Shown: piece by piece, positions 981-63,058 of the stretch
How positions within the stretch are numbered: position 1 is the stretch's first letter
Layout: every line of letters starts with the position of its first letter
IMG/VR virus record: IMGVR_UViG_3300028558_000791
Location: 310,001 to 374,000 of that record
Strand: one strand, 5' to 3'
DNA length: 64,000 bases
Made by a program: the position numbers and the translations under genes
Notes under the pieces: model-generated
What the model was told of the DNA's origin: nothing
Seen by the model: the letters and a program-made list of their open reading frames with translations, nothing else
The model's database searches: none

Positions 981-993
981 TCCATTGGATTGC

Positions 994-1009
994 CTAATAA
1001 TTTTGCATT
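994..1009 (+). promoter_or_regulatory. Putative phage (late-type) promoter motif CTAATAATTTTGCATT
   Basis: Intergenic, 16 nt before ATG 1026; resembles motifs at 33258, 36506, 47641(-), 47713 and 54872. Confidence 0.4.
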
Positions 1010-1025
1010 ACAAGGTGGAGCCGGT

Positions 1026-1457
1026 ATGTCTTTTGACCTAAAAATAGTTAACGGGGATTTGGTTGTCAGCCAAAGTGCCCTTCAGACCGTGGAAGATAGC
1101 GAAAAGCTTATCCAAGACATCCTCAAGATTTGCTTGACGGACGTAGGGGGTAATCCCATACATCCGTCATATGGTTCTTTCTTGTCGAGATCAGTAATTG
1201 GGAACGCCCAACAGACTAGTGTAGTTGTGCAAATAGCTAAGTCACAACTCAATACTTGTTTGACGAATTTGCAGTATTTGCAAACCCTACAAATGAAATC
1301 TCTACAAAAAATGACTGCAGATGAGCAACTTGCAGCAATAACAGGTATATCTGTAGTAAGAAGTGCATTTGATCCAAGACTCTTCAACGTTAAAATCAGT
1401 TGTGTGACAAAAGGATTCAAACCAATCACTACTGCTTTTAGTATCTCAACAATTTAA
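1026..1457 (+). CDS. Baseplate wedge protein, gp25/GPW-like
   Basis: DLKIVNGDL...KLIQDILKICLTDVGGNPIHPSYGS pattern typical of gp25-like proteins; GGTGGAG RBS before ATG 1026; precedes the baseplate J-like gene. Confidence 0.75.
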   Translation: MSFDLKIVNGDLVVSQSALQTVEDSEKLIQDILKICLTDVGGNPIHPSYGSFLSRSVIGNAQQTSVVVQIAKSQLNTCLTNLQYLQTLQMKSLQKMTADEQLAAITGISVVRSAFDPRLFNVKISCVTKGFKPITTAFSISTI

Positions 1458-1466
1458 GGATAGCTT

Positions 1467-12712: not shown

Positions 12713-12720
12713 GAGAAGTA

Positions 12721-40565: not shown

Positions 40566-40837
40566 TTGAAAATCGCTCCATAAGACTAGAAGACTATCTC
40601 AAGCAATACGACCTTGAGAAGAGTATTAGTTTTATGAGGGCGATTTTTCATTTCAGTTACACAAAAACTCGTGGTGATGATGGTGTTTATATTTGGTTTG
40701 GCGATAAAGATTGGGGTACTAATTCCAAATGCTTTATAGCTCATGTCGGCTATTGTTCATTCATCTTTATTGATTATACAGAAGATCAAGTGATCGACAA
40801 GTATGATCGATATTACAAACTAAAGGCATTTACATGA
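40562..40837 (+). CDS. Hypothetical protein with C-terminal RYYKLKAFT tag
   Basis: Coupled ORF. Confidence 0.6.
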   Translation: MIENRSIRLEDYLKQYDLEKSISFMRAIFHFSYTKTRGDDGVYIWFGDKDWGTNSKCFIAHVGYCSFIFIDYTEDQVIDKYDRYYKLKAFT

Positions 40838-41376
40838 AGGTATATTTTGTTGGCGCTCATAGCACTGGTAAGACGACGTGTGCTCGCTATGTTTCCGAGC
40901 AATACAAACTGCCTATGATTACAGAGGTGGCAAGAGCTGTCCTGTCTGAAAAGGAATTGCATTTAGATAGCTTGCGATACAATATGGATTTGGTAGATGA
41001 TTACCAACAGTCTATTTTCTACAGGCAGCTTTCTGAAGAAACAAAGCATGATACTTTTGTCTCAGATAGAAGTTTTGACTGTCTTGCTTACGCGGCCCAG
41101 CATACGCGCATTCTATCTAAGTTACTTACCAGCGATCAGATGATGCCGTATGTTGAAAAACTAAGGGACTCAGACGTATTTATATTCTTCGTTCGACCCT
41201 CCAAGGCTACCCTGAAGGCTGACGGCGTACGAGAAAGTTTAACGTGGGATGGCGTGGTCGCAATCGATGCCATGGTGAAGTTTATGTTAGAGATGTGGCA
41301 GCTTAAGCACTATCAGATTAATATGGAGAATATGCAAGAGCGTATTCAGCTAATTAACGCGGTGCTTGAGCGATAA
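40834..41376 (+). CDS. P-loop nucleotide kinase-like ATPase (AAA_28/NadR-like)
   Basis: GAHSTGKTT, EVAR, VSDRSFDCLAY, DGVR. Confidence 0.75.
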   Translation: MKVYFVGAHSTGKTTCARYVSEQYKLPMITEVARAVLSEKELHLDSLRYNMDLVDDYQQSIFYRQLSEETKHDTFVSDRSFDCLAYAAQHTRILSKLLTSDQMMPYVEKLRDSDVFIFFVRPSKATLKADGVRESLTWDGVVAIDAMVKFMLEMWQLKHYQINMENMQERIQLINAVLER

Positions 41377-42193
41377 ACGTCTGACAACACTCTCCAAACT
41401 GATAAGTGGGTTTTACCACTGTAACAGCAGAAAATCTAGTATTCAGAATGGCAGTAAGCTCGCTAACCGTTGGAAAGTGATGTTTAGCCGTTTTGCCCCT
41501 ATATACATCTATGGTAGCAACATCGGCCGGAGAGAATCCGTTATGTGGAGACGCTTTAAGTATCATCTGCACGGCCTTCCAGACATCATCTTGGCTGACG
41601 CCCTCTTCAAATGATCTTTGGAGCGCCATAGCTACCCTAAATTTGAATTCATGAAAGTTGATATGATAACCGTCACTATAACCATCATGAACATCGTGAA
41701 GAATAGTTGTAACGGTTTCTCTTCTTTCGGGCATTACAAAACAGCGAGTTAGAAAAATGCCATTATTATCTAGCGCCAAAGATACTCTAGTAACTAATCT
41801 TGACACACCTTCTGGATTGAAAAATACTAACGATCCATCTGCCAAAACAATGTCTTTTGATCTATTTACTATGTAGTAGTTAAACCAGTCCCCATGAACG
41901 GCGGTACGTTGGTTAGGAATATCTCCTGGCCAGACATACTGAATCATGGCCTCAGACTTATCTATAGCTAATAGGTTAGTGGGAGTTGGGAAATTCATAG
42001 TAGCAATTTCAGGAGTAACTCCTAATAAAACAGCTTGAGCATATCCGTCAACAGGCGCATATCCATCTGAGGACCAAACACCAAGTGAATCCTCTAAGAT
42101 AGTTGTATCTTCGATATTTGGTCGCAATGGTGGTGCCCAATGGTCCCACATGGTGGCAATGGCATTCCATGTATCTTGTAAGTCATTTGGCAT
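41354..42193 (-). CDS. Class I SAM-dependent methyltransferase-like protein carrying four DGY motifs
   Basis: WAPPLRP, LLGVTPE, AIDKSEAM, GDW, DIVLADGSL, GIFLTR Rossmann-MTase pattern. Confidence 0.7.
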   Translation of the reverse strand: MPNDLQDTWNAIATMWDHWAPPLRPNIEDTTILEDSLGVWSSDGYAPVDGYAQAVLLGVTPEIATMNFPTPTNLLAIDKSEAMIQYVWPGDIPNQRTAVHGDWFNYYIVNRSKDIVLADGSLVFFNPEGVSRLVTRVSLALDNNGIFLTRCFVMPERRETVTTILHDVHDGYSDGYHINFHEFKFRVAMALQRSFEEGVSQDDVWKAVQMILKASPHNGFSPADVATIDVYRGKTAKHHFPTVSELTAILNTRFSAVTVVKPTYQFGECCQTFIAQAPR

Positions 42194-43586
42194 TGATATT
42201 CTCCGGCTCTACAACGATTATTTTCAATTTTCCATTAGGACGTTCGATAACTTCGCTCTTCTTTATATCGACATGAACAGTAGATTCTACCTCTTCTTGA
42301 ATGCATTGAATCATTTTTAACCCATGTTCGTCGGTCCACTCTTTATTAGGAACTACTCTTAATGTGAAGTTATCGATATTGTGTTGAATAACTTGGAACT
42401 GACGAACCCCGCCTATTTGACGTATACCTAACATAATTCCAGTAGATACTTTACGACGATTGCCGGCTAAGAATAGCATTGGATGCCTTCTACCATTGAT
42501 ATGTTTTAGAAGTGGTAAACCGCGACCACAGGAACAAGGCTCATTGGCAAGCGTTACTTCGTCAATGATATCGTATCTAATAAATGGATTAATAAAATTG
42601 GTTAAGCTTGTAACAACTAGCTTACCAGTTTCTCCAGGCTTACATGGATTATTTTGTTCATTCAGAACTTCTACGTATACACTCTCTGCATGGATATGTA
42701 ATCCATTACCAGTCGGACAAGAAGATGCAATGTAACCGGTTTCGTTAGCCGAATAAAGATTGACTACTTTGGCTCCAAAAGTTCTTTCAAGTCTTTCTTT
42801 AATTTGTGGAGTAAGAGTCTCTCCAATGGTTTGGATTGTTTCCAAGTCTGGTAGTTTTCTACCACTCTCTTCAACCAAATCAGCTAACACTTCTAAATTA
42901 GAAGGCATACTGATTAGATAATTTGGATTAACAGTTCTGAGCCAAGTTAATTGGACTTTAGGGTCTTGACGTATATCCATACCATGAACTGGTACGCATT
43001 TGAAGACACTGTATCCATGAACTTTTGGTAGCCAAGTAGGTATTGAAATGCCCTTAACAGCAATTTCATAGTCGCTCTTGTTCATACCAATCAATCTAAT
43101 AGATGCCATACGTTTCATGGGGTCCATGCCACCCCATTCAAAATCACGCATAGCCATTGCTTGCCACCACAAATTATCTCTATCTGTTTTGTATAGAGAG
43201 ATAGGCGTGCCGTTAGTTCCTGAAGTATGTATAGGCGAGGGGCTTGGAATCATCCCTTCTGGTAGTTTACTAACCTTAATACTAGAGTAATGATCTTGAT
43301 ACTTCTTGCGAGTTAGTAGTGGTATTTTTCTAAACTCTTGAAAACTTGTAATTGGTTTCCTTCCAATACCACACTGATCTAACATCAGCCTATAGTAAGG
43401 CGAGTTATCATAAGAGTGTTGTAGTAGATTATTTATCTGTTGAAGTTGGGCCTGCTCTAATTGTTCCGGACTTAACCATTGTGTTTTAGTTAGTTCAGTA
43501 TAGGCGCTAACAACAGACGTAAACTCAGGAATAGGAACCATCGGCCAGGTTGAGCCTGGAGTGGATGTAAACTTAAAAAAACTCAT
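42183..43586 (-). CDS. Adenylate-forming enzyme, phenylacetate-CoA ligase/CapK-like
   Basis: HTSGTNGTP P-loop, NLYSANETG, GKLVVTSL, PFIRYDIID, GRR. Confidence 0.85.
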   Translation of the reverse strand: MSFFKFTSTPGSTWPMVPIPEFTSVVSAYTELTKTQWLSPEQLEQAQLQQINNLLQHSYDNSPYYRLMLDQCGIGRKPITSFQEFRKIPLLTRKKYQDHYSSIKVSKLPEGMIPSPSPIHTSGTNGTPISLYKTDRDNLWWQAMAMRDFEWGGMDPMKRMASIRLIGMNKSDYEIAVKGISIPTWLPKVHGYSVFKCVPVHGMDIRQDPKVQLTWLRTVNPNYLISMPSNLEVLADLVEESGRKLPDLETIQTIGETLTPQIKERLERTFGAKVVNLYSANETGYIASSCPTGNGLHIHAESVYVEVLNEQNNPCKPGETGKLVVTSLTNFINPFIRYDIIDEVTLANEPCSCGRGLPLLKHINGRRHPMLFLAGNRRKVSTGIMLGIRQIGGVRQFQVIQHNIDNFTLRVVPNKEWTDEHGLKMIQCIQEEVESTVHVDIKKSEVIERPNGKLKIIVVEPENINAK

Positions 43587-43609
43587 TGTGACTTAGATAT
43601 AACCAAAGG

Positions 43610-46600
43610 TTAACCGCCAGTAAATCCAGGAACCTCAAACCATTCGGCTGTGGCCATTACACTTATTATATTGGTTGCATCGCCCCTAAAATTAAATCTG
43701 ATAATGTTATCAGACGCACTAATACTAAAGTCCCAAACGGTTCCATTTGGAACATCATGTATAACAAATTGATCATCAATAATTGCTGTGCCGTTAACAT
43801 TATGAACTAAAATTTGACGACTGAACATTGCAGCTTGTTCATTATTGATGCTATTGGCAATACATGTGACTCTCATAGCATAAGCTTGACCTGGCTCTAG
43901 GAATAACTCTCCACTAAATTCATCTCTAAGTGTTATTGGAGCTTCATTAAATGAAGTTCCTTTTACAAAGTATCTTGCAAATTGAGCATCTCCGGGACTA
44001 CCTAAATAGCCGCCTGCATGAGATAGTTGTCCGGTTCTTATTGCTTTACCACCATGTCCGCCAGGAACGGTTCCATAATCTGCGGTAACACTGTTTTGAT
44101 AGCCGCCGCCAATGGTTCCTTTACCGGCTGAAATGCTGTTATTAATTCCTCCAGCAATTACGCTATAGCCATCACCACCAGAGATGACGTTATTAGTGCC
44201 ACCACCAACTGTATCAAAGTGGTCTTGTGTTCTATTGCTAGAACCTCCAGCAATTGTTCCATATGGTTGAGTAACGGTGTTGTTAGAACCGCCACCAATG
44301 GAAGCGTCGTTTGCACCAGATAAAACTTGGTTAAACTGGCCGCCACTAATGACTGCATATGATGCGCTATTATTGTTGTTAGCGCCACCACTTATTACGG
44401 CTCCAGAGCTGTTGCTGACGTCATTACCAATACCTCCAGCAATCGTGGCATAATCTGCTGTAACAATAGCATGGCCATGACCTCCACTGATAGTGCCTCC
44501 TGTAGTGTCACCAATGGAATGTCCTTCTCCGCCAACAATAACATTCCATTTACGGCCAGGCGTGCCAGTACTATAAATAGTGTTATTGCCACCACCACCA
44601 ATAAATGAGAATGTTGGTGGTCCACCGAGACCACTAGTATCATAAATTAAGTTACTGAATCCACCAAGTATTACGTCATATTCGCCTTGTGATTTGTTAT
44701 TAAGACCACTTAGAATGACCGCATAGTTGTTGCCAGTGCCGGGTGATAGGTATGGGTTAGTTTGTTCAGCAAAATTTAACTGACCTGAAAATGCGGGACT
44801 GACATCTGATTGATTTAGTTTGGTAGATACTAAATTAGAACGACCAATAACATCATCAAATACTATATCTCCCTGAAACCATTTAGCTGAAAATGGGCCA
44901 GCCCAAGATTCGTTGAACTGATTTGAACTATTATCAATGCTTACAATTGAGTTTCCGCCAGGATTAGCTACCCAAGTATAATTATTGTAGGAATCGTAAG
45001 CCATTCCCATAAATGGAGCGCCACTTAATCCAGATGTTGGAATCTTAATGGTAGCTGTTATTGATGGAGAACTAGTTATAGCTGTAGATACTCTAAAGAC
45101 AGTATTGTTACTATCATTAATCCAGATATCACCATCGTTATTACCATCAGAGATGATGTCTCCAGCAAAACCACCAAGACTTAAAAGTCCATTTGCTCCG
45201 CTATTAAGATTTTGGAACTCAAACTCTTGAAGAAGTTGGCTTCCCAAAGAAGTGGTCCATAATCCCCAACCAAAAGAATTGTGATGTACTGGTACAACAC
45301 CGCCGAGTTGATAACCTGGTGTATAACCCGAACCATTACCATAGTTACCAAATATAGTGCTGAGGCCGTCATCAACAGAACAGAACTGGTAGATATAGCC
45401 GGCACTGCCGGTGACTAGATAACCACCTTCGCCACCAATGAAGCACATATCTTCCCAGTCGGCCGTGCCGTTTGGTATGATTTGGAAAAGATCCGGATCA
45501 ATTTCAGTAGGGTAATTTGCAATCATATCAGAGATACTAAATCTCTGAACAACATCAGGTTGCGGATCGCTGACTGGACCTCTAGCCTTACATACTACCC
45601 AAAGGTAGTCTGCATTTCCGGTAGTGGTGATAGCTGTTGTCTGTCCAGTTTCAGTTCCTTTGGAATTACCAACACCAACAACTGCGGCACTGTTCTTATT
45701 GATAACATATACTTTACCACTATTATTAGAGGTTACATATACATTTGTTGAGTCGCCAGTAATTTTCCAACCTTGGAACGATCCTGACAAGCCAACATTA
45801 TTAGATAATACTGGGGAACCAGATGTAACATTTAGTTTTTGAACAGTTGGGGTCGAGGCATTAGTAACCCATAAATCATATGTTGCTGAATCAAACCATA
45901 AACCTACTGGGGTGATAAATAATTGATCTGGGACCAATCTCAAATTATCATATACATTACCTGGTGGTGGTAAAGTTCCAGCATCAATATTCAGATTTAC
46001 TGTATCAAATGCGCCCGATGAAAAAGTTCCGCCGCTTGGAATATTAATTGTTCCAAATGCTCCGATTCCAGTTCCATTATTTTGAAATTGCAATTGATTG
46101 GTAGATGATGGAATAGATGTGTATACAATTTCTAATTGACCACCAAAGAATTTAACCCAAGCTTCTGTACCTAATCCGGTAGAGATAGCATCCATACCGC
46201 CAGCGTAGCCACCAGTACTTAAGGTCCAAATATAAGTGCCATCAAAAGCTGGCATACCAAAACCGTATGGAGAATGACTTACTGAAGCAATTACAGCCTC
46301 ACTACCAAGCGTTGTTGATATTCTATATGCTACTGAACCATTATTAGTTTGCCAAATAGTGGAATCATCACTTATAATACATCGTCCCACACTAGGGTTA
46401 GCTGTAGGTATGAATGCAATAGGCGCAGAAAGATTAGATGGATCAAATCTATGAATGCCTCCACTACTCTCATGGAAATTATTAACCCATAAGCTTCCAA
46501 AAGCAAACGTGCAACCATATGCTACACCAAGACCAGGACTATCTTCGGTATATGAATCAAGCACAGTCATACTTGATGGATCTATTTTGTAAATCTTTCC

Positions 46601-47623
46601 ACCATCATATCCGCCGCTTGTGACAAATAGGAAGCCACCACCAAAACACATATTACCATAATATGATCCAGAAGCATCGGGACCTAGTGTCTGAAGAGGT
46701 GGTACTGAATTAGGGTATGCTAGAAGTGCAGCAGATTTAGAATATTTCTCAACTCTAGAGTTATTAAGTGGCGTACTGGTACTTGGGCCAGTAGAAACAT
46801 AAATATTGTTTCCATCAACAGCAATATCAAGGAAAAATTCTCCAGTACTACCAGTAGAAATTCTACCAACTATATTATTAGTTGCTCTTTCGATAATGAA
46901 AATGTGACCATAAGGGAAACTGGCTGGTCCAACTTGGTTATATCCAAGAGATGTAACAAAAATGTGAGTGTCATCTGATGTTAGTAACCCACTATTATTG
47001 CTTAGTGGTAGCTCAACTATCTTTGTAATTTCAGGGGTAGCAGGGTTTATTCTAAGTACGCCATTGCTTCCGCCATTGGAGACCCACAAATCTGTTCCAT
47101 CAAATATGATTCCAGCAGGCCCCTGAAAAGACTCTTTAGCTTGGAGATATTTGCCCGCATCATTATTGAATTCACCTTGATGACCTTTTCTTACAGGAAT
47201 AGTATTGATACCAATTACTTCTTGTGTAACTGGATTTCCTTGTAAGTCACCAGCAAAATGTACGTTAGCTGGTTGAGTGCCTGGTGTCCAGGCAAGTCCG
47301 TCCCAGACATATACATCACCAGGAGCTGGAGGGACGGTAGAAATAGGGCGGCCGTGAATACCAATGACCTGGGGATGTTCTAATGTTCCGCCCAAATCAT
47401 TTTCAAGTTCAATTACTCTTAAATTGCCAACAATATTTTCAAGTGCATCAAAGCGAGCACGAACGGTGGCATAAAGACCACTTGGTTTTACTCCTAGTTC
47501 CTCTTCAATGGCGATTATCGCCACTCTTAATTGCTCAACAGATCCGCCAGTTACTGGCTGTCCGTCAAGAATTGGCTTGAGGGTGAAAACGGTGTCTATG
47601 GCTGCTGGGTATTTTGTTACCAT
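43610..47623 (-). CDS. Tail-fibre/receptor-binding-like protein with beta-propeller repeats and GG-N repeats (1337 aa)
   Basis: N-terminal TKYPAAID...AIEEELG coiled segment; repeated FDGTDLWV/FDGTYIW blades; C-terminal I(G/A/S)GG-x-x-N repeats. Confidence 0.65.
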   Translation of the reverse strand: MVTKYPAAIDTVFTLKPILDGQPVTGGSVEQLRVAIIAIEEELGVKPSGLYATVRARFDALENIVGNLRVIELENDLGGTLEHPQVIGIHGRPISTVPPAPGDVYVWDGLAWTPGTQPANVHFAGDLQGNPVTQEVIGINTIPVRKGHQGEFNNDAGKYLQAKESFQGPAGIIFDGTDLWVSNGGSNGVLRINPATPEITKIVELPLSNNSGLLTSDDTHIFVTSLGYNQVGPASFPYGHIFIIERATNNIVGRISTGSTGEFFLDIAVDGNNIYVSTGPSTSTPLNNSRVEKYSKSAALLAYPNSVPPLQTLGPDASGSYYGNMCFGGGFLFVTSGGYDGGKIYKIDPSSMTVLDSYTEDSPGLGVAYGCTFAFGSLWVNNFHESSGGIHRFDPSNLSAPIAFIPTANPSVGRCIISDDSTIWQTNNGSVAYRISTTLGSEAVIASVSHSPYGFGMPAFDGTYIWTLSTGGYAGGMDAISTGLGTEAWVKFFGGQLEIVYTSIPSSTNQLQFQNNGTGIGAFGTINIPSGGTFSSGAFDTVNLNIDAGTLPPPGNVYDNLRLVPDQLFITPVGLWFDSATYDLWVTNASTPTVQKLNVTSGSPVLSNNVGLSGSFQGWKITGDSTNVYVTSNNSGKVYVINKNSAAVVGVGNSKGTETGQTTAITTTGNADYLWVVCKARGPVSDPQPDVVQRFSISDMIANYPTEIDPDLFQIIPNGTADWEDMCFIGGEGGYLVTGSAGYIYQFCSVDDGLSTIFGNYGNGSGYTPGYQLGGVVPVHHNSFGWGLWTTSLGSQLLQEFEFQNLNSGANGLLSLGGFAGDIISDGNNDGDIWINDSNNTVFRVSTAITSSPSITATIKIPTSGLSGAPFMGMAYDSYNNYTWVANPGGNSIVSIDNSSNQFNESWAGPFSAKWFQGDIVFDDVIGRSNLVSTKLNQSDVSPAFSGQLNFAEQTNPYLSPGTGNNYAVILSGLNNKSQGEYDVILGGFSNLIYDTSGLGGPPTFSFIGGGGNNTIYSTGTPGRKWNVIVGGEGHSIGDTTGGTISGGHGHAIVTADYATIAGGIGNDVSNSSGAVISGGANNNNSASYAVISGGQFNQVLSGANDASIGGGSNNTVTQPYGTIAGGSSNRTQDHFDTVGGGTNNVISGGDGYSVIAGGINNSISAGKGTIGGGYQNSVTADYGTVPGGHGGKAIRTGQLSHAGGYLGSPGDAQFARYFVKGTSFNEAPITLRDEFSGELFLEPGQAYAMRVTCIANSINNEQAAMFSRQILVHNVNGTAIIDDQFVIHDVPNGTVWDFSISASDNIIRFNFRGDATNIISVMATAEWFEVPGFTGG

Positions 47624-47640
47624 CTTGTAAGTCCTGCTAT

Positions 47641-47728
47641 AATATCAAAATTTTAGCATAAGCAGAGAATCTGACTATCTATATCTGAAGAACTCTTAAA
47701 GTCAAGAATATACTAAAATTTTGATATT
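47641..47728. promoter_or_regulatory. Divergent promoter pair: perfect 16-bp inverted repeat CTAAAATTTTGATATT
   Basis: 47641-47656 (AATATCAAAATTTTAG) is the reverse complement of 47713-47728; each copy faces a divergent structural gene. Confidence 0.7.
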
Positions 47729-47757
47729 CTTGTGAGCTTTTAGTTCAATGAGGATAC

Positions 47758-49425
47758 ATGAGCGGAATTTTAACTCCAGGATACCTAAGGTGGGATGGCA
47801 CCAAATATGTTCTAGACCACGATGTAGAAATCGTTGGTCCATCAGGCTCACAGGGTCCGGCAGGTATTGCCGGACCAGTGGGTCCAGCCGGTCCTAATGG
47901 TACTGCTTCAGGCGATCTGTTAGGAACTTTCCCAGGTCCCATATCAGTGGTTGGCCTAACCGGCATCTCTGGCACTGTCAGTTATGGCTCGGCCGTAACC
48001 AATCCAACGATTACTCAAGTAGCTACGGCAGGTACAACCGGCCAATCAATGACCTGGAAAGCACAGAATGCTACCCTATTCGGTGGTAATGCCGTAATTC
48101 AAAGTGGAACTGGTACTACTGCTGGTCTTATTCAATTTTTAGTAGGTAATACCGCTGCAGCATATTTTGATTCCAATCAGGCTTTTAGATTTGGACCAAA
48201 TGCTACCTCCACCGTAACAGGGCCAAATGGAGTTTCTCCATTAGCTGGTACTGATTATATCTTTGGAAACAATGCTGCCGGAAGTATATTGTCTGAAATA
48301 TTTACAGAATCATCTTCACAAAGAGCTGGTTACTTTGCATACAATGCAGCGGCTGGTGGAACTGGTGTCAGCGGAATCAGTATACAGTCTCCTGGAACAA
48401 CTTATACTGTTGGAGCATACCAGGGTCAGGGAGTTATCGAGCAATCAGGTCTCGCAACTTCTGCAATGATTTTTAGCAAAGTCTTGGGCGACGGTTCATC
48501 TCGTGGTGTGACTGGTCGCGTTTTCCAATCTGGAGCTTGGAGCATTGGAGATTTAAGCAGTTCATCTTCTTTTAACCAAGCCGGTTTAACTGGTCCAGTA
48601 ATGAATTTCGCTCCTGTCGGTGGAACTTTGACCACTACATCTGGCCAAGCCCTAATATTCGCACAAAGTTTCGGACCAAGCAGCCAGGGCCTTCTTAACC
48701 TTCAAGGAAATATTGGAGTTAACTTACTATCTGGAACTACATTAGTAGCAAATACTTTAGCTTCTAAGTTTATTACTAATGTTGGTAGAAGAATTAAAGT
48801 TAGAACTACTACAACTACTCCTGATACTATGACGGGAGCTGATGAGGTTCTTTCTATTGGTGCAATCGCAACTCCTTTTACTGTTAATTTACCAGCCACT
48901 CCAACATCTGGTGATACCTATATTATTAAGGATGCTCTGGGAAATGCGGGTAACTTTAATATTACTGTGTCTGGTAACGGTAGCAACATTGACGGATTCT
49001 CAACTATACTTATTAGCACCAACTATACAGAAGCATCTTTTGTATACAACGGTACGACATGGATTTCATCGCTAACCAACAATATCTCACCAAATACCGG
49101 ATACTCTTCTGTTATAAACGTAGCAAGCGGCGGTAGCGCTAGTATAGTAGGTCTTGATCAGCTTTTCGTTTGTGACCCAACTAGTAATACTTGTACTATT
49201 ACAGCTCCAGCAACCCCAACTGTTAACTTAAGATTTACTGTAAAGGATGCTACATTTACTGCTAATACACATAACATTGTTGTTCAGGGTAATGGTAGGA
49301 CACTAGAAGACCCGGCCACACTTGGTACATATACTTCCCCAATTAATATCAACGTAGCTGGCCGTTCAGCTACTTGGGCTTATGACCCAACCAGAAATAG
49401 ATACACCCTAGTTTCAAGGATATAA
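47758..49425 (+). CDS. Fibre-like virion protein with short collagen-like segment
   Basis: GPSGSQGPAGIAGPVGPAGPNG; GDLLGTFPGP motif shared with ORF 43610; two C-terminal T(V/I)xxP...KDA...NI.V.GNG repeats. Confidence 0.65.
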   Translation: MSGILTPGYLRWDGTKYVLDHDVEIVGPSGSQGPAGIAGPVGPAGPNGTASGDLLGTFPGPISVVGLTGISGTVSYGSAVTNPTITQVATAGTTGQSMTWKAQNATLFGGNAVIQSGTGTTAGLIQFLVGNTAAAYFDSNQAFRFGPNATSTVTGPNGVSPLAGTDYIFGNNAAGSILSEIFTESSSQRAGYFAYNAAAGGTGVSGISIQSPGTTYTVGAYQGQGVIEQSGLATSAMIFSKVLGDGSSRGVTGRVFQSGAWSIGDLSSSSSFNQAGLTGPVMNFAPVGGTLTTTSGQALIFAQSFGPSSQGLLNLQGNIGVNLLSGTTLVANTLASKFITNVGRRIKVRTTTTTPDTMTGADEVLSIGAIATPFTVNLPATPTSGDTYIIKDALGNAGNFNITVSGNGSNIDGFSTILISTNYTEASFVYNGTTWISSLTNNISPNTGYSSVINVASGGSASIVGLDQLFVCDPTSNTCTITAPATPTVNLRFTVKDATFTANTHNIVVQGNGRTLEDPATLGTYTSPININVAGRSATWAYDPTRNRYTLVSRI

Positions 49426-55996: not shown

Positions 55997-58753
55997 TTAT
56001 GGGTTCAATCCGCCGGCACCATTCCATCTCATATAGATTCCATTTTGGAGATGTAGAAATTGTGCGGTTCCATTAACAGTACCACCACCAGTATATGGAT
56101 TTAGTCCATTAGTATTGTTTAATGTAAAGTGAGTATTATCAACTACTGTAATAACAAAAGTTCCATTAGCAACAGTATTGCCTGTTACTCCAGTAATGAC
56201 CACCGTCTGTCCAGTTACTAATGTATTAGTTGCAGATGTTGTAATTTGGATTGGTGATGTAGCGGTCGCTCCAGTTACCGTTAGGGATGTCGTGTTATCG
56301 GTGCTTAAAGTAAAGGTTCCAAAGTTAGCTCTTCCTTGTCTAATATTTGGCGCAGTTCCCATAAATCTCTGATTGATAGTATTTACAGTTAAACCACCAA
56401 TAGCAATTGGTAAGCTACCTACGTTATCTGTTGCTGTTCCGCCCCAAATTTCCCAAGGCAATAACTCTGTAGTTCCTGTAAATGGACTATCTCCGGCATT
56501 CGTGGCGTAAGCTGGACTTGCACCAGAAACTCCATCCGCATTTGCCCAGCCCGAAATTAAACAGGTTTCAGGTGCAGAATCTCTGAACGTGTAGCCAAAA
56601 TTATTGGAGTTACCCACTCTCATTTGAATTCCACTATAATCAACAGTATTAACTCCACCATAGACAAATGGTCTATTGGTAGTTGGAGCTAATGGCGATG
56701 GCTCATTGCTAGGTATTCCCATTAGAAGGAGTCCATTGGCGCCTGCACCCTGTGTTCTAGCATACATGAAAACTGATTGACCAAGATCATCACCCATTAC
56801 AGTCATACGATAAGCAATAGCTCCAGTTGTTGAAGCTCCAACAACCGATGCCGCATAAGGTGAAACGGGATTGTTTCCTAAATATTGCGATATGCTGCTA
56901 GTTATTCCGCCTATAGGCCAGTCACCATTTAAGACTCCGCCGAAACCAACACTTACTGATGTTGGAGGCATATTTGGAATGTTAAATGGTTCAACGGCCA
57001 TTCTAGATTGCCATGCAGTTGAGTGCGGGCTTTGTAGAATAATCTTACTATTAAATGAATATCCATCACCACCAGTATATCCAATACGACTTATAGATCC
57101 GGAAGTGGTAGAGGTACCATTACCAATAGACCCATTGAGTGTAAACGTATTACTTCCATTAGTTGTAATTGTCCAAGTGCCATTAGCATTTGTATTTCCA
57201 GTCACACCAGCTATAGTAACTCTTTGACCAGTTAAAAATTGATTGATCGTATTCAAATTAGGTGTAACTTGAATAGGTGCCGTGTTTGTTGTTGATAGCA
57301 TTCCTAAACCAGTAATAAAAGTATTATTTGGGTAGGACGCGTAAAATGAAACTTGAGTTTCAACTTCATACAACCACCAATCCATAGTCTCGTTAGGTGG
57401 AGTATCAGTAGAGCGATAATCAATTGTATAGCCGTTGAAATTATTAACTGTGTTACCAGTAGTCATTGTGCCAGTTCCACCAGTACATCCTGTAAATTGC
57501 GTGCCGCCTGAAATTCCGGTATATGCTACTGTCTGTACCCCTGTAGTTGTAAAGACAAAAATGTTTCCGCTAGTTGGGAATCCGGCCGTGGAAGCGACAT
57601 TTATAGTAGACTGTGGAAGTGATGCATTGTTAGAGCCGACAGCAATAGTGGTGCTGTTGCCAGTATTAGCGGCAGAGATTTTGAAAGCGCCAGAGTTTTT
57701 GGTTGTATAACTGGAACTTTTTAGTACTAGTATTCTACCTGCATCTCCTGTAGTTGGTGCAGTTCCAGATACTACAACTCTAGCAGATTGTGGAATGCTA
57801 ACAGCATAGACTGAGTTAGCGCCAGTCACATTTATCTGTGCTCCCGTTCCTCCAGCAACAGTACCAGATGCGACTAGCATACCTGTAGGTGTTAGAGTTC
57901 CAGAAAAAGCGGTGTAGGCAGCGCCATCAGCCTTAGAACCAACCAGCGTTAATTGTGTCGGGCTAGTAACAACAGTTGGCCATAGTCCATTAAGATTGGC
58001 TGTACCGGCAATTCCGGATGTTAAAACATACTGGCCACTCGTTACTCCGTGTGGTACTTGAGTTGTAATGGTTGCATACTGATTAAGCGTAGTAGTAGCG
58101 GCCGATATTTTAGTTGGTCCACAGAAGATAGTGCTTGCAGCAGAGGTGACAGCATTACCTGTAGCCATAGAACCGGTGCCACCTAGACATCCAGTAAAGG
58201 TCGTTGCACCAATTCCAGTATATGTTACTAGTTGAGTGCCTGCGGAGGTAACGACATAGATAGATCCACTAGTAGGAAATCCTGCTGTTGTGGCTACGTT
58301 GATAGTTGCTTGCGGAAGAGATGCTCCGTTAGATCCTGAAGTTATTGTTGTGGCTTGACCAGATGACATACTACCAGTTCCACCAGTGCAATTTAAGAAT
58401 GCATTAGCTGTAGTACCGGAATATTTGACAGCCTGAATCCCACCAGAAGTATTGACATAAATAGTTCCAGAATTAGGGAAACTAGTTGTTGATATTACAT
58501 TGATGATAGATTGCGGAAGTGATTGTCCATTTGACCCAGCAGCTACGGAGGTTCCATTGCTGGCCGTAAATGTTTGCACATTTGAGTTGTTGATATCCCA
58601 TCCAGTATTAGAAACAACAGAATGACCTAATATTTTGTGCATGAAGACTGGCAACAAATATTGCTGTGTAACCCAGAAGTAATTGACACCACCACCAGGA
58701 GCAAAATATCCAGTGGTTGCCATAGGATAGTCTCTTAGAATATGAACAGCCAT
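55997..58753 (-). CDS. Fibre-like virion protein, paralog family (918 aa)
   Basis: Shares GRILVL, IDYRS, WWLYE, IILQSPH, MGDD, GRANF, HLQNG motifs with its neighbours; contains repeated inserted modules. Confidence 0.7.
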   Translation of the reverse strand: MAVHILRDYPMATTGYFAPGGGVNYFWVTQQYLLPVFMHKILGHSVVSNTGWDINNSNVQTFTASNGTSVAAGSNGQSLPQSIINVISTTSFPNSGTIYVNTSGGIQAVKYSGTTANAFLNCTGGTGSMSSGQATTITSGSNGASLPQATINVATTAGFPTSGSIYVVTSAGTQLVTYTGIGATTFTGCLGGTGSMATGNAVTSAASTIFCGPTKISAATTTLNQYATITTQVPHGVTSGQYVLTSGIAGTANLNGLWPTVVTSPTQLTLVGSKADGAAYTAFSGTLTPTGMLVASGTVAGGTGAQINVTGANSVYAVSIPQSARVVVSGTAPTTGDAGRILVLKSSSYTTKNSGAFKISAANTGNSTTIAVGSNNASLPQSTINVASTAGFPTSGNIFVFTTTGVQTVAYTGISGGTQFTGCTGGTGTMTTGNTVNNFNGYTIDYRSTDTPPNETMDWWLYEVETQVSFYASYPNNTFITGLGMLSTTNTAPIQVTPNLNTINQFLTGQRVTIAGVTGNTNANGTWTITTNGSNTFTLNGSIGNGTSTTSGSISRIGYTGGDGYSFNSKIILQSPHSTAWQSRMAVEPFNIPNMPPTSVSVGFGGVLNGDWPIGGITSSISQYLGNNPVSPYAASVVGASTTGAIAYRMTVMGDDLGQSVFMYARTQGAGANGLLLMGIPSNEPSPLAPTTNRPFVYGGVNTVDYSGIQMRVGNSNNFGYTFRDSAPETCLISGWANADGVSGASPAYATNAGDSPFTGTTELLPWEIWGGTATDNVGSLPIAIGGLTVNTINQRFMGTAPNIRQGRANFGTFTLSTDNTTSLTVTGATATSPIQITTSATNTLVTGQTVVITGVTGNTVANGTFVITVVDNTHFTLNNTNGLNPYTGGGTVNGTAQFLHLQNGIYMRWNGAGGLNP

Positions 58754-61700
58754 TACGTTCCTCCTGCCAGTACGTTATACGGTAGGATAGAACCATCCCA
58801 AGGAAGTAATATTCCATTAACTAAATGGATAAACTCACCACTATTTCCAACTAAATAAAATTGTGGTAATGTACCGCCCGTAAACTGCATTGGTCTCATT
58901 CTAGCTCTTGCAAATGAATACTGTCCAGCAGTTGAAGATACTGACATTAAAGCATCACTATATATAACTTGTCCAGTTTTATTTTGATAGGATAGGAATG
59001 TTGATAGGTTAAATCCTACAGTATATGCTGGCAAGATATTTCCTGGAGTACCTATAGTGCCTCCCGTATCACCGCCAAGATTTCTTGTTATCAATTGATG
59101 GGATCTAGTAACTCCATCAAATCCGACCATACCAAAAGATGTAGAAACGGAATCTGTAGTGTTACTTGCAGTTAACCCATTGCCACCAACTAGTATGGCT
59201 AGTAAATTAGGATCTTGTGCTTGCGTATACAATCTAGTTGGAGTGCAAGCCATAAAGTATAATGCTTTAGCGTTCGCTGCACCGTTGGAGTTAGCAGATT
59301 GAACATGGCCAAAGAAAAAGTCAGTATCGGCGAAAATTGTAACGAACCCACTTACGTTTATGTTTGCGCCGTTCAAAGTCACACCGTTAGCACTTGTTCT
59401 TTCTGTCATAGCTGAATTAGAGCCTGTTCCAGAAAAAGTAGCTCCAGACCAGCTACCATTAGGAGATCCTGCCATTCCAAAAGTTCCGAAAGCATTAGCC
59501 GCTCCTCTTAAGAAGAATTGAAATTGGCTTGGGGCTTGTCCAAAATTGATGTTAGCAGCTCCATTCATGGTTCCTACAAAATAGTTACCATTAGCTACTG
59601 CCAACTGAGATGCTGCTACAATATCAATTACTCTGTAGCTAAGTGAAGCTCTAGATGTTAGATTGTTTTTAAGAGTTGATATGTCTGTTGTTCCGCCGCT
59701 AAATGGAACCAATTGCAATTGTGTATTTGATGGCACAGCTACAATCTTGTAAATAGAGTCATCTGTACTTGCCGGATTAACAGATACATTTCCATTAGTG
59801 AACATAGTGCCGGTGCCTCCAGTACATCCAGTAAATATCTGTCCCGTAACAGCATTACCAGTAGTCATAGCTCCAGTACCACCCGTACATCCAGTAAAGC
59901 TAGTTGCAGTTACTCCAGTATATGTTACTACTTGTGCGGCGTTAGCATTCGTAATTACATTGATAGTTCCACTTGTTGGAAATCCGGTTGTGGATCCTAC
60001 ATTGATTGTTGCTTGAGGAAGTGATTGTCCATTAGATCCGACTGCAATAGTAGTATTAACTATTCCAGTATAAGCAACTGTTTGAGTACCAGCATTTGTT
60101 ACTACAAATATGGTTCCACTGTTTGCGAACCCAAGAGTGGATCCTACATTTATATTTGACTGTGGTAGTGTTTGTCCAACAGAAGCCTGACTAACTCCTG
60201 TATTAGCTCCAGCCAACCAGACAACTACATGCTTACCTATCATAGTAGCTGGACTAAATGGAGTTGAGGCAGAAGCTGTTAAGGTGCTACCGATAGAAGA
60301 GGTGACTCCATCGTTTCCTACAGCCAAAACACTTGCTCCCTCAAAAAATCCGGCCGGACCGCTGGTTGGAGAAATTGGCATTCCTCCCGGTACAAATACT
60401 TGACCACCACTAGTATAAGTGGCATTGCCAACAGCTCCATTCAAACTGAATTGAGTAGAGCTTACAACGGTAACGTTCCAACCACCATTGGCATTGGTAT
60501 TTCCACCTACGTTATATACGCCGACTAATTGGTTATTAGATAGATTATGGGGAGTGGAGGTAGTTATTGTAATTGGGTTGGCATTAGAGGCTGCAATTAC
60601 GTTAAGCATTTGGTTAGTGCCATTGACGCAATACGCCCAAAACTCATAGCACAACTTCATGAAGATAGGGATATCCTTACCATTCGTTCCTGTTGTGTAT
60701 TGTAAACCTCTAAGTAATTTTAAAGCCATTTTATCCTTATGCTACCACTGGCGGACCGCCCCACAATAACCACAAACCCCTTCTCATATGTTGTCCAACA
60801 AGATCAGTGGTTGTGGTAAATTCAGAGAAATTAGCTCTTCCTTCCCTTATATGCGCAATAGTTCCCAGGAACCTTCCTTCTAGTCTGGGGAAGCCATAAT
60901 TGATGGCTGCCGAGCCGTTCCAAGTGTTTACAATTCCAGCCATTACATCTACTGGATACAGTTCTGTTCCGCCAAGCCAAGGGGATTCGCCAGCGCTACC
61001 ATCAAAAATTGGACTGCCTTGTTGTCCATTTCCAAAAATATAAGCCAACAATGTAATATTCAGTGTAACTGGTAATGGAACTTGGCCAATAGCTGACTGA
61101 ATAGTTATGCCTTGTGTATTACCGCCTCCAATATTTCCCGGATACCAACTCATATCGTTTAAGCTATTCCCGCTACCTGAACTTAATCCCGAACCAATAA
61201 CAAATAATCTAGCTTCATTGTTTGGTGGTAATGGAACTATTTCCTGAGCTGGTAGTCCAAATGTTAGGAAGTATGATCTTGGAGTACTGGCATTTCCTGG
61301 TCTACGACCAAATATTGAAACACCATAACCATCATCATCTCCTGCTAAAGTAATTCTATAAGGCATAGAATTAGTTCCAGCAGGGATATTTGTATTATCA
61401 CCAAATCCTAAAGTTCCACCTTGCAAATTATTGCTATTTGAATTGTAATATAGTGCAGTGTGAAGATGTGGCCCTCCAACCGCAAAGTCTCCAGAAGCAT
61501 TGCCACCAAATCCAGGAGCAAAACTTATTAACGGGCACTCAGAGCTAACGCCCCCAGTTCCAACTGAAGAATCATCAACTGTTTCATGACAAATTCTAAC
61601 TTGCCAGGCCAAAGCATGCGGGCTTTGAAGAATAAGTCTTGGTGTCGTAGAAGTTCCATTACCCCTATATTGTAAAGTAGTATTTCCATTAGAAGCACCT

Positions 61701-62630
61701 TGAATTGGCGAAGAGCCATCTTTTTCATATAGATACCAATTCATACTATCAGATGGTTCTGCTGGCGGAAGATTAGGTGAGAAGTAAATTGTACCACCAG
61801 TTGACATGGATCCAGTTCCTCCCGTACATCCTGTGAATGTAGTCCCGGTCGATCCTGTGTATGAAACTTTTTGTACACCAGCAGATGTTGTTACATAGAT
61901 GGTTCCACTGTTAGGATTGAATCCTGCTACCACTGCATTACCAGTACTCATAAGGCCAAACCCACCTAAACATCCTGTGAATGTGGTCGCTGTAGTTCCA
62001 GTATAGCTAACTAACTGTTTACCATTATCAGTTGAAACCCAAATGTTTCCGGCAGTAGGAAATCCCGTAGTAGAAGCTACTGTGATAGTACCGGCAGTCG
62101 CTGTTGGCAATCTGGTCGCATTGGAGGCGGATGCAATTGTTGTTGTAGCAGTAGTTGTTGAAGCGACGTTAATAGTTGCTTGCGGCAAAGATTGACCGTT
62201 AGATCCAGAAGCAATCGTAGTGGTAGTTGCAGAAACTATTGTAGAGAATCCAATGACACCTGTACCACCCGAACATCCTGTGAAAGTGGTAGCCGTTATT
62301 CCGGTATAGCTAACTGTTTGCCTACCGGTACTAGTATAAACAAATAGAGTTCCGCTACTTGGAAATGGTGTAGTGGATGGGACCGTTAAGGTAGTTTGAG
62401 GTAGAGTAGTTGCATTGTTAGCTACACCATTTCCAGTTCTCATAGCTCCAGTGCCACCCGTACAACCGGTGAAAGTAGTAGCCGTTTTTGCAGTATAGGT
62501 TACAGTTTGCACGCCGTTATCAGTATACACTAAAATAGTTCCACTAGCGGGAAATACTGTTGTTGAGCTTACGTTAATAGTGCTTGTAGGAAGAGAAATG
62601 GCATTAGAGCTAGATATGATTGTTGTATCT
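57440..62630 (-). repeat. Nine copies of a ~65-aa module (TTIAxGSNGxSLPQxTINVxSTxGFPxSGTIxVxTxxGxQxVxYTGxTxTxFTGCTGGTGxMxTG)
   Basis: 3 copies in the 918-aa, 2 in the 658-aa and 4 in the 773-aa protein, read from the translations; boundaries approximate. Confidence 0.85.
58753..60729 (-). CDS. Fibre-like virion protein, paralog family (658 aa)
   Basis: LLR N-terminus; C-terminal HLVNGILLPWDG; nested repeat modules. Confidence 0.7.
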   Translation of the reverse strand: MALKLLRGLQYTTGTNGKDIPIFMKLCYEFWAYCVNGTNQMLNVIAASNANPITITTSTPHNLSNNQLVGVYNVGGNTNANGGWNVTVVSSTQFSLNGAVGNATYTSGGQVFVPGGMPISPTSGPAGFFEGASVLAVGNDGVTSSIGSTLTASASTPFSPATMIGKHVVVWLAGANTGVSQASVGQTLPQSNINVGSTLGFANSGTIFVVTNAGTQTVAYTGIVNTTIAVGSNGQSLPQATINVGSTTGFPTSGTINVITNANAAQVVTYTGVTATSFTGCTGGTGAMTTGNAVTGQIFTGCTGGTGTMFTNGNVSVNPASTDDSIYKIVAVPSNTQLQLVPFSGGTTDISTLKNNLTSRASLSYRVIDIVAASQLAVANGNYFVGTMNGAANINFGQAPSQFQFFLRGAANAFGTFGMAGSPNGSWSGATFSGTGSNSAMTERTSANGVTLNGANINVSGFVTIFADTDFFFGHVQSANSNGAANAKALYFMACTPTRLYTQAQDPNLLAILVGGNGLTASNTTDSVSTSFGMVGFDGVTRSHQLITRNLGGDTGGTIGTPGNILPAYTVGFNLSTFLSYQNKTGQVIYSDALMSVSSTAGQYSFARARMRPMQFTGGTLPQFYLVGNSGEFIHLVNGILLPWDGSILPYNVLAGGT

Positions 62631-63058
62631 GGAGTAATTGATGTCCCACTTCTATAATCAATGACATAAGAATTAGTGCCAGTATCAAATCCGGTAATTA
62701 GAAAACAACCTGAATTAGATTGTGGATTAGCCGTACTTCTTAGGACTAGTATTCTACCCTTATCGGTAGCAGAAACTGTTCTAGTCCCTGATGGAATAGA
62801 AACGTTCAACTCGGTATTCAAACCTAGATTGATTCCGGCTCGTGAGCCGCCAGCAAAAGTTGGGGCACCAGTAGGAGTAGAGTCGGCGGTAGAGATTAGT
62901 AACGTTCCAACAGAATTTATGTTGTAGTTCGTATCACCAACATAGGTATACAACAAAACTCTTCTTAAAAAGATCGTTGATAGATACGAGCCAATGAATG
63001 TAGAGGTTGTAGTATTGAAATTCTGTGTTACATAATCTCTGAGTAAATGCCTTACCAT
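60737..63058 (-). CDS. Fibre-like virion protein, paralog family (773 aa)
   Basis: HLLRDY N-terminus; four repeat modules; GRANF...HMRRGLWLLWGGP. Confidence 0.7.
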   Translation of the reverse strand: MVRHLLRDYVTQNFNTTTSTFIGSYLSTIFLRRVLLYTYVGDTNYNINSVGTLLISTADSTPTGAPTFAGGSRAGINLGLNTELNVSIPSGTRTVSATDKGRILVLRSTANPQSNSGCFLITGFDTGTNSYVIDYRSGTSITPDTTIISSSNAISLPTSTINVSSTTVFPASGTILVYTDNGVQTVTYTAKTATTFTGCTGGTGAMRTGNGVANNATTLPQTTLTVPSTTPFPSSGTLFVYTSTGRQTVSYTGITATTFTGCSGGTGVIGFSTIVSATTTTIASGSNGQSLPQATINVASTTTATTTIASASNATRLPTATAGTITVASTTGFPTAGNIWVSTDNGKQLVSYTGTTATTFTGCLGGFGLMSTGNAVVAGFNPNSGTIYVTTSAGVQKVSYTGSTGTTFTGCTGGTGSMSTGGTIYFSPNLPPAEPSDSMNWYLYEKDGSSPIQGASNGNTTLQYRGNGTSTTPRLILQSPHALAWQVRICHETVDDSSVGTGGVSSECPLISFAPGFGGNASGDFAVGGPHLHTALYYNSNSNNLQGGTLGFGDNTNIPAGTNSMPYRITLAGDDDGYGVSIFGRRPGNASTPRSYFLTFGLPAQEIVPLPPNNEARLFVIGSGLSSGSGNSLNDMSWYPGNIGGGNTQGITIQSAIGQVPLPVTLNITLLAYIFGNGQQGSPIFDGSAGESPWLGGTELYPVDVMAGIVNTWNGSAAINYGFPRLEGRFLGTIAHIREGRANFSEFTTTTDLVGQHMRRGLWLLWGGPPVVA

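Follow-up and report, generated by a model that had tools for sequence, protein, structure and literature searches.

An optional tail-fibre cassette in a soil jumbo phage, with a PaaK-like ligase and a predicted methyltransferase-fold protein carrying the Asp-Gly-Tyr motif of the tail proteins

The enzymes and genes closest to those described here are of four kinds. Phenylacetate-CoA ligase PaaK and the PaaK-like ligases, including the ester-forming ligases NatL2 and AjiA1, belong to the ANL superfamily of adenylate-forming enzymes, and NatL2 shows that this subfamily can pass the acyl-adenylate to a phenol rather than to CoA (PMC7204872). The class I SAM-dependent small-molecule methyltransferases (Methyltransf_11/25) include CmoA, UbiE/MenG, CysG and PE N-methyltransferase. 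In phages, enzymes encoded in or beside the structural module and proposed to act on virion proteins are a concept cited in PMC11256854 and PMC12801897; mycobacteriophage glycosyltransferases, for example, are held to glycosylate capsid or tail proteins. In addition, accessory genes such as morons, receptor-modifying genes and fibre-assembly genes may be placed directly downstream of tail-fibre genes. Below we report a locus that touches on all of these, in a roughly 480-kb rhizosphere jumbo myophage (IMG/VR record IMGVR_UViG_3300028558_000791). The window, that is, the whole stretch analysed, comprises 64,000 nucleotides (positions 310,001 to 374,000 of the record), and all coordinates refer to it.

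Three co-oriented genes on the minus strand make up the locus: a 1337-aa tail-fibre-like protein at 43610-47623(-), a 467-aa PaaK-like ligase at 42183-43586(-), and a 279-aa protein of class I methyltransferase (MTase) fold at 41354-42193(-), whose start overlaps the ligase stop by 11 nt. A sequence-only reading had described this unit, with a SAM-MTase carrying four Asp-Gly-Tyr (DGY) tripeptides as two tandem pairs, and our analysis confirms that observation. The MTase has 5 DG dipeptides, 4 of them DGY, at residues 43-51 and 170-176, while about 0.04 DGY would be expected by chance in a protein of this size. Close DGY pairs (6 aa or less apart) occur 5 times in the genome against 0.26-0.55 expected (P about 1e-5 to 3e-4). 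The same reading placed the unit behind a copy of a 16-bp promoter repeat, and here a caveat is needed. The 16-mer CTAAAATTTTGATATT occurs only twice in the whole 480-kb genome, as an inverted pair at 47641-47656(-) and 47713-47728(+), which lie 17 nt upstream of the fibre ATG and 29 nt upstream of the divergent 555-aa gene, respectively. Loose matches are at chance level, and a k-mer survey of upstream regions found a different abundant repeat that is absent from this intergenic region. This shows that the 16-mer is a local element and not a genome-wide promoter motif, and any promoter activity is putative. The plus-strand copy is the ancestral one; the cassette-less relative G001 has a single copy in the same place.

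The ligase is assigned with confidence. Its AMP-binding domain (PF00501) scores 41.6 bits against a cutoff of 29.9, and it matches solved PaaK-type structures with E values of 9e-22 for 9s3l and 4r1l, 4e-20 for AjiA1 (6wuq) and 4e-19 for 6siw. All catalytic motifs are kept: the P-loop TSGxxGxP (T121-S122-G123..G126), A5 YSxxExG (Y278..E282), A7 RYxxxD (R337-Y338..D342), the A8 GR hinge (G365-R366) and the A10 GK with the catalytic lysine (G452-K453) are invariant in an alignment of 10 phage and bacterial cassette ligases. However, it is far below every NCBIfam equivalog cutoff, with 90.4 vs 646.3 bits for PaaK (TIGR02155), 109.9 vs 700 for NF041878 and 141.9 vs 300 for the DVU_1553 family of AMP-dependent CoA ligases (NF045666), so that neither PaaK orthology nor membership in the DVU_1553 family is reached.

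The MTase call rests on the predicted fold and on named homologs. Of 230 homologs, many are named SAM-dependent MTase or carry PF08241 or PF13649, while the window protein itself has no Pfam hit; a profile of the family hits PDB MTases at E 1.6e-5. The structural model (pLDDT 95.7) shows a complete class I Rossmann core of the seven-strand type, with Foldseek probability 1.0 to many SAM/SAH-bound MTases, although identity to any solved MTase is 17% or less. The canonical motif I, (E/D)xGxGxG after beta1, is missing, and the whole family has LLGVTPE instead (G58 and T60 invariant, E62 nearly invariant), so SAM use is inferred from fold only. The usual acidic residue after beta2 and the conserved D119-G120 are present. 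DGY pair 1 (DGYAPVDGY, residues 43-51, 42041-42067(-)) lies in the loop between helix 27-42 and strand beta1, and pair 2 (DGYSDGY, residues 170-176, 41666-41686(-)) in the loop before the conserved NFHxFK helix. Whether bacterial homologs already contain these segments had been named beforehand as a test, and they have no DGY at either site. Pair 1 occurs only in the five closest homologs (P0001-P0005), which form a single subclade, with a spacer varying from 2 to 4 aa, and the extra SDGY of pair 2 is a 4-aa insertion found only in the window protein and its 87% relative (P0001 and P0002). The two copies in pair 2 use different codons, so this is not recent slippage. In total, phage MTases carry 20 DGY in 3007 aa against 14 in 30401 aa for other homologs, about 14 times the density. 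Some phage MTases (P0006, P0011 and P0012) have no DGY, although the one such phage locus examined, which leaves out the contig of P0012, is itself DGY-rich.

The fibre-like gene lies in the tail module, in a block that holds sheath, baseplate wedge, fibre-assembly and fibre-like genes, though the 1337-aa protein has no Pfam or PHROG hit. Its N-terminal conserved region (about residues 1-145, 47189-47623(-)) is about 80% identical over the first 120 residues to the ortholog (P0147) in a related phage contig, L094, and has 71% identical matches in two IMG/VR contigs. The central region (about residues 150-930, 44834-47176(-)) may consist of two beta-propeller-like blocks, which is only a lead from language-model look-alikes with SGL/lactonase/Vgb-lyase propellers (scores 0.75-0.83). 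The C-terminal module (residues 941-1337, 43613-44803(-)) is predicted to be a YadA-head-like GGxxN beta-roll followed by a terminal beta-sandwich (model pLDDT 89). The model matches solved phage fibres and tailspikes, with Kp9 gp42 at 2e-6, Fri1 gp49 at 3e-6 and T4 gp9 at 4e-4, though with low TM (0.34-0.38), while BFVD phage proteins reach TM 0.82 and UspA1 head repeats are matched at E 2.5e-7. This module is the only part of the fibre that is shared among the phage cassettes, and it travels with the ligase-MTase pair.

We then examined the distribution of the pair. The MTase family occurs in 253 species genomes, and 32 of 80 bacterial loci have a homologous ligase adjacent, showing a widespread, self-contained bacterial two-gene module. 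In the tree, the phage copies form one clade nested beside Planctomycetota sequences, so one phage clade appears to have captured the module once. The bacterial copies have no fibre-like or other constant neighbour, no third conserved partner was found, and the 139-aa protein between ligase and MTase in Desulfosudis gave only E=0.005 against the fibre tip in a single pairwise comparison, which is not meaningful. In phages, the order fibre-ligase-MTase and the 11-nt overlap are conserved in the related contigs L002, L003, L004, L008 and L009 and in the more distant L096, and in all phage contexts where the upstream gene is visible the pair lies directly 3' of a fibre gene with the same tip domain, which holds also after inversion of the whole unit. 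The cassette is, however, optional. In the window it is inserted in inverted orientation between an AAA_28 kinase-like gene at 40834-41376(+), whose 3' end overlaps the MTase 3' end by 23 nt in convergent orientation, and the 555-aa fibre-like gene at 47758-49425(+) (phrog_972, tail fibre proximal subunit). In two close relatives, G001 and G002, the AAA_28 homolog (79% identity) is followed directly by the 555-aa homolog (67-68%), with about 66 nt between them, and no ligase or MTase is present anywhere in their 359-kb and 210-kb records. A third relative has the orthologous fibre without the enzymes, and other fibres with the same tip lack them too, so the enzymes are not needed to make this fibre. 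Among GenBank phages there is no DNA or protein match to the cassette, the MTase or the fibre tip, only distant PaaK-like genes at 25-28% identity, and an IMG/VR scan with the MTase alignment found no relatives. PADLOC gave no hit for any of the three proteins.

The DGY motif was next analysed in the genome as a whole. It is the most over-represented tripeptide (80 vs 21.4 expected), and the excess is confined to the structural block (64 vs 7.2), about nine times expectation, while the other 462 ORFs have 16 vs 14.1. Against a dipeptide-corrected expectation the excess has z=14.6. Only 2 of 64 sites are explained by paralogy, which is thus rejected as the source. A DNA-level, slippage or RNA-motif origin is also rejected, since codons are mixed, the pairs use different codons and the signal is in frame only (64 vs 1-2 out of frame). 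NGY, DGF, DGW and EGY are not enriched, ruling out a generic beta-turn preference, and DGY is not enriched in 149 unrelated fibre-like proteins, ruling out a general property of such proteins. In G001, which lacks the enzymes, the ninefold excess is kept (62 vs 6.6), and 44 of 49 sites (90%) are conserved against 56% expected (P=2e-7). Therefore, DGY is a selected tail-protein motif that does not depend on the ligase or MTase, and it was later grafted onto the MTase, which points to an unknown recognition system. Literature searches for a DGY motif in phages and for CapK/PaaK in polysaccharide modification found nothing relevant.

On the whole, the interpretation given by the sequence-only reading is partly supported. 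Its proposals that the pair is of probable bacterial origin and that DGY was added in loops hold, and DGY as a portable recruitment tag is a reasonable but unproven reading; in contrast, nothing shows that the enzymes acylate or methylate fibre residues or glycans, and DGY is not a mark written or needed by this enzyme pair. What the analysis does establish is the optional, exchangeable cassette with its gene content and intact ligase motifs, the bacterial module apparently captured once, and its constant position behind this fibre tip type. Beyond this we can only infer that the three genes are made together from a duplicated copy of the upstream element of the neighbouring fibre gene, that the ligase activates a carboxylate as an acyl-adenylate and passes it to a thiol, amine or hydroxyl acceptor, and that the MTase methylates the same substrate or product. 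In this view, the most likely target in the phage is the co-encoded fibre tip or something bound to it, making the pair an optional fibre-tailoring accessory, and the DGY pairs, which are not part of the family's conserved core and copy a tripeptide that this clade's tail proteins carry under purifying selection, most probably let the enzyme engage whatever recognises DGY on tail proteins, for recruitment to the assembly site or the virion. We hold this explanation tentatively, as it is without direct evidence of a substrate, of late expression or of virion association; only DNA runs from rhizosphere metagenomes contain the region, and complex prediction of ligase plus MTase gave a score of 0.00, which is evidence neither way.

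The main alternative, somewhat less likely in our view, is that the pair is a moron-like passenger acting on a host small molecule or cell-envelope precursor, for example to mask a receptor or alter metabolism, which sits beside the fibre gene only because fibre loci are recombination hot spots where cargo accumulates; the DGY loops would then reflect the same pressure acting on late proteins rather than virion targeting. The autonomy of the module in bacteria, where the absence of a fibre-like neighbour shows that the ancestral substrate is not a fibre, agrees with this, as do the small-molecule substrates of the nearest enzymes by sequence and fold (PaaK, NatL2/AjiA1, CmoA, UbiE and PE N-methyltransferase), the optional nature of the cassette, and the four different gene arrangements seen at this junction among relatives. 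On the other hand, the linkage to one tip domain extends to the distant L096, and an enzyme with four DGY is out of pattern for a purely metabolic protein, since the excess is otherwise restricted to structural-module proteins. It is also unlikely that the MTase-fold protein is not a methyltransferase but binds another ligand or serves as an adaptor or chaperone for the ligase or the fibre. The non-canonical motif I, the low identity and the lack of a Pfam hit leave room for it, but many family members reach Methyltransf_11/25, the predicted core is complete, and strong family-wide invariants suggest a catalytic or ligand-binding site.

That DGY is the substrate of the pair, modified at its Asp or Tyr, with the loops of the MTase as auto-modification or pseudo-substrate sites, is very unlikely. 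The acylation of phenolic hydroxyls by NatL2 (PMC7204872; the 6siw family), the Tyr and carboxylate present in DGY, and the fact that the MTase is the only recognisable enzyme carrying DGY pairs would speak for it, but it is largely refuted by the enrichment and conservation in G001 without the enzymes, and bacterial hosts of the module show no DGY excess (37 vs 39). Least probable of all is that the pairs are neutral accidents, despite their location in variable loops that tolerate change, considering the density in phage MTases, the excess of close pairs, and the retention of pair 1 in five homologs of 56-87% identity while its spacer changes length. A further possibility, bolder and rather doubtful though not excluded, is that DGY is a transferable short linear motif, a tail-protein code specific to this jumbo-phage clade and read by an as yet unidentified modifying enzyme, chaperone or assembly scaffold, so that grafting tandem copies onto a horizontally acquired bacterial enzyme was enough to route it to the tail-assembly site or into the virion. 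The glycosyltransferase encoded at 17544-18680 is one candidate for such a reader.

If the inferred parts hold, a ligase-plus-methyltransferase module tied to one fibre tip type would be a new kind of accessory at the receptor-binding end of a phage, suggesting chemical tailoring of fibres beyond glycosylation, and would give a handle on the function of a widespread bacterial two-gene module. Meanwhile, the DGY signal is unusually clean for a three-residue motif: it arose many times independently, is specific to D-G-Y, is conserved above background and has been acquired by an imported enzyme. Short linear targeting or modification motifs are familiar in eukaryotes but hardly described for phage virion assembly, and this system makes the question directly testable.

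Compared with the systems introduced above, the ligase shares with PaaK, AjiA1 and NatL2-type enzymes the AMP-binding domain and core motifs (E 9e-22 to 4e-18 to solved structures), but belongs to a separate clade that is paired with a specific MTase, carries an invariant CxCGRxLP motif and is set in a phage fibre locus. The MTase-fold protein has the Rossmann-like fold of the class I small-molecule MTases (TM by target 0.6-0.7), whereas its family has LLGVTPE as motif I and its own N-terminal W..W.PPLRP..D and C-terminal Y.FG.CCP signatures, and the phage copies carry DGY loops. With the phage enzymes proposed to decorate virion proteins, the pair has in common its place at the structural module, while its predicted chemistry is adenylation plus methylation rather than glycosyl transfer, and the cassette is optional and its enzyme pair of bacterial origin. 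As for the accessory genes downstream of tail fibres, the position immediately 3' of a fibre gene, the presence or absence among close relatives and the movement together with a fibre tip module are the same, but the unit has no similarity to known fibre chaperones (no PHROGs hit) or to defence proteins in PADLOC, and is a two-enzyme module.

The window (positions 310001-374000) lies in a virus record of 480,838 bp, which was recovered from rhizosphere metagenomes. The observation of the sequence-only reading holds, since the three minus-strand ORFs are exactly as it described: a 1337-aa protein at 43610-47623, a 467-aa protein at 42183-43586, and a 279-aa protein at 41354-42193, whose start overlaps the preceding stop by 11 nt. 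The 3' end of this unit overlaps, in convergent orientation and by 23 nt (window 41354-41376), the end of an AAA_28 kinase-like gene, and no terminator-like hairpin was found between the two genes. Its 5' end faces a divergent gene for a 555-aa fibre-like protein that hits phrog_972.

We then present the three proteins in more detail. The 467-aa protein is an ANL-superfamily enzyme of the PaaK type, with the Pfam AMP-binding domain above threshold and E-values of about 1e-21 to solved PaaK, AjiA1 and NatL2-type structures. However, it falls far below every NCBIfam equivalog cutoff, so it is not a PaaK ortholog. An alignment of ten phage and bacterial cassette ligases keeps the P-loop, A5, A7, the GR hinge and the C-terminal GK lysine invariant, and shows in addition a family-specific CxCGRxLP motif. 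For the 279-aa protein, the Pfam search of the window protein itself returns no hit, while among its 230 homologs many carry PF08241 or PF13649 or are named SAM-dependent methyltransferase. A structural model built on 98 sequences is very confident (pLDDT 95.7) and matches class I methyltransferases (MTases) only, with an identity of 17% or less to any of them. The whole family has LLGVTPE where GxGxG is expected, so that the use of SAM is inferred rather than shown. The 1337-aa protein has no hit to a curated family, but a role as tail fibre or receptor-binding protein is supported by its location in the tail module, by its first 120 residues, which are about 80% identical to an ortholog in a related phage, and by its last 397 residues, predicted to be a YadA-head-like beta-roll plus a beta-sandwich. 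The model of this C-terminal part (pLDDT 89) matches the Klebsiella phage Kp9 fibre gp42, the Acinetobacter phage Fri1 tailspike gp49 and T4 gp9, as well as many uncultured-phage proteins with TM-scores up to 0.82. The central part gives only weak beta-propeller leads.

The MTase family occurs in at least 253 bacterial species genomes, and in 32 of the 80 loci retrieved a homologous PaaK-like ligase lies immediately adjacent, Desulfosudis oleivorans being a named example with a ligase at 30% identity and E 3e-55. No third neighbour recurs in these loci and the contexts are heterogeneous, showing a self-contained bacterial two-gene module. The only bacterial context seen with a large secreted-type repeat protein beside the pair is that of a Rhodospirillaceae genome (locus L075), where a 1984-aa RTX-repeat protein at 927-9177 (+) lies directly upstream of the MTase-ligase module. 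In a maximum-likelihood tree, nine jumbo-phage MTases form one clade (100/98), which sits beside a further phage copy (from contig L096) and Planctomycetota sequences, inside a much wider bacterial diversity. This fits a single capture from bacteria, although the tree is unrooted and the direction rests on the breadth of the bacterial diversity. In the phage contexts seen, the pair always follows a fibre gene, which holds in the phage contigs L004, L008 and L009 and also in the distant L096, whose ligase and MTase are 46% and 37% identical, respectively. The 11-nt overlap is kept in the close relatives, while only the C-terminal module of those fibres is shared with the fibre of the window.

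Actually, the cassette is optional. In two IMG/VR relatives, G001 (359 kb) and G002 (210 kb), neither enzyme is found, and the AAA_28 gene (79% identical) is followed directly by the homolog of the 555-aa protein (67-68% identical), with about 66 nt between them. In the related phage contig L094 the orthologous fibre is present at the same site without the enzymes, and L097, another soil phage contig, has a fibre with the same tip and no enzymes. On the whole, the junction between the AAA_28 gene and the 555-aa gene (window 41376-47757) shows four different states among the window, L004, L008, L094, G001 and G002, namely no insert, fibre only, inverted fibre-ligase-MTase, and collinear fibre-ligase-MTase followed by a second fibre, and is a hot spot for fibre-module exchange.

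G001 has a single copy of the element ACTAAAATTTTGGTATTCT in front of its homolog of the 555-aa gene. The window keeps that copy and has a second, inverted, exact 16-nt copy 17 nt upstream of the fibre ATG, and these are the only two copies in the genome. The cassette therefore appears to share the upstream element of the neighbouring fibre gene, which suggests co-regulation but does not prove a promoter. A different repeat, with core GGCTCCCATTCACGG, is the most common k-mer in upstream regions of the genome, with about 60 copies genome-wide, e.g. upstream of many ORFs; its 12-mers lie in 9-10 upstream regions and have 19-32 copies genome-wide, and the 10-mer CTCCCATTCA has 60 copies. It is absent from the fibre intergenic region and could be a real promoter or terminator-like repeat. 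In addition, tRNA-like k-mers (GGTTCGAATCC) recur in upstream regions, and a tRNA nucleotidyltransferase gene lies at 257859-259103 of the record, next to the major head gene.

It is of interest to consider the two DGY pairs of the MTase. Pair 1 (residues 43-51) lies in the loop before strand beta1, and pair 2 (residues 170-176) in the loop before the conserved NFHxFK helix, where the confidence of the model is lower. Pair 1 is present only in the five closest homologs, which form one subclade, and both of its DGYs are kept while the spacer varies from 2 to 4 residues. In pair 2, the first DGY sits on the xGxI position of the family and also occurs in the homologs P0003, P0007, P0008 and P0010, while the second is a 4-aa insertion found only in the window protein and its 87% relative. 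Bacterial homologs have no DGY at either site, and the phage-clade MTases carry 20 DGY in 3007 aa, against 14 in 30401 aa for the rest. The presence of these segments in bacterial homologs had been named beforehand as an outcome that would overturn the sequence-only reading, and it is not observed.

Below we report the analysis of DGY across the genome. Overall, DGY is the most over-represented tripeptide in the proteome, with 80 observed against 21.4 expected, followed by HHH (16 against 1.5). The excess of DGY is confined to 255-393 kb, where 64 are observed against 7.2 expected, while the remaining 462 ORFs have 16 against 14.1. This block is the virion module, including the major head protein, sheath, tape-measure-like protein, gp6-like baseplate wedge, fibre-assembly protein and fibre-like proteins. 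DGY is found in the sheath, the baseplate wedge and many large unassigned proteins of the module, however is absent from the major head protein. Against a dipeptide-corrected expectation the excess has z = 14.6, far above any other tripeptide. Codon use is mixed and the tandem pairs use different codons, and 64 DGY lie in frame 0, against 1-2 in other frames and 4 antisense. Paralogy explains little, since only 2 of 64 sites align to a DGY in a paralog, and the similar tripeptides NGY, EGY, DGF and DGW are not enriched. Neither 149 unrelated fibre-like proteins (40 observed against 50 expected) nor the bacterial loci (37 against 39) show an excess.

Tandem pairs of the form DGYxDGY or DGYxxDGY, like those of the MTase, also occur in three other proteins of the block, of 504, 121 and 1507 aa, at 260678-262192, 275107-275472 and 284602-289125 (+) of the record, respectively, making five close pairs in total against 0.3-0.55 expected. 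The pair in the 1507-aa protein appears conserved in G001 and G002, as judged without an alignment of orthologs from DGY-coding 9-mers that lie 12 nt apart in a run of matching spacing in both records. Outside the structural block, a 415-aa protein at 98306-99553 (+) of the record has 6 DGY within Kelch-like xDGYIYxFGG repeats, where the motif is explained by repeat homology, unlike in the tail proteins. DGY arrays occur also beyond the immediate clade of the window, as a 191-aa protein in L097 (12392-12967, minus strand) has 5 DGY, four of them spaced 8-9 residues apart within 30 aa. Within the window, a glycosyltransferase gene at 17544-18680 (+) (phrog_2170, E 2e-24) lies 798 nt downstream of the large DGY-rich baseplate/fibre genes (1467-16746), and its product is a candidate virion-modifying enzyme or DGY reader. 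In addition, families of 36-99-nt direct repeats (60-83% identical, 4-8 copies) lie inside the minus-strand genes for 918-, 658- and 773-aa proteins at window 57400-62700, indicating repeated protein domains in these large structural-looking proteins.

The same excess of DGY is seen in G001, which is missing the cassette (62 against 6.6). Of 49 alignable DGY sites, 44 are conserved, against 56% expected from the conservation of D, G and Y elsewhere in the same proteins (P=2e-7). The contig L004 is also enriched (12 against 1.1). DGY is therefore a protein-level motif of the tail proteins of this clade, which has arisen convergently, is under purifying selection, and does not depend on the ligase or the MTase.

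Taken together, our analysis demonstrates the anatomy of the cassette, its origin, its optional nature and the DGY statistics, while the function is inferred, and the interpretation made from the sequence alone is partly supported. We tentatively favour the reading that the pair is an optional fibre-associated tailoring module, which would be made together with the fibre, and that the DGY loops of the MTase are a clade-specific addition that may let it engage whatever recognises DGY on tail proteins. The main rival, which we consider somewhat less likely but which remains possible, is a passenger module that would act on a host metabolite or envelope precursor and be lodged in a recombination-prone fibre locus. 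The idea that DGY is the substrate motif of the enzymes themselves is largely excluded by the excess and conservation of DGY in the cassette-less G001, and chance is excluded by the statistics.

No described phage in GenBank was found to carry this cassette, and a literature search found no paper mentioning a DGY motif in phages. The DGY phenomenon is the more unusual part of these results and deserves attention in its own right. As a gene arrangement, the cassette follows the known habit of phages to keep accessory genes beside fibre genes, of which the fibre-ligase-MTase unit is a form new among them.
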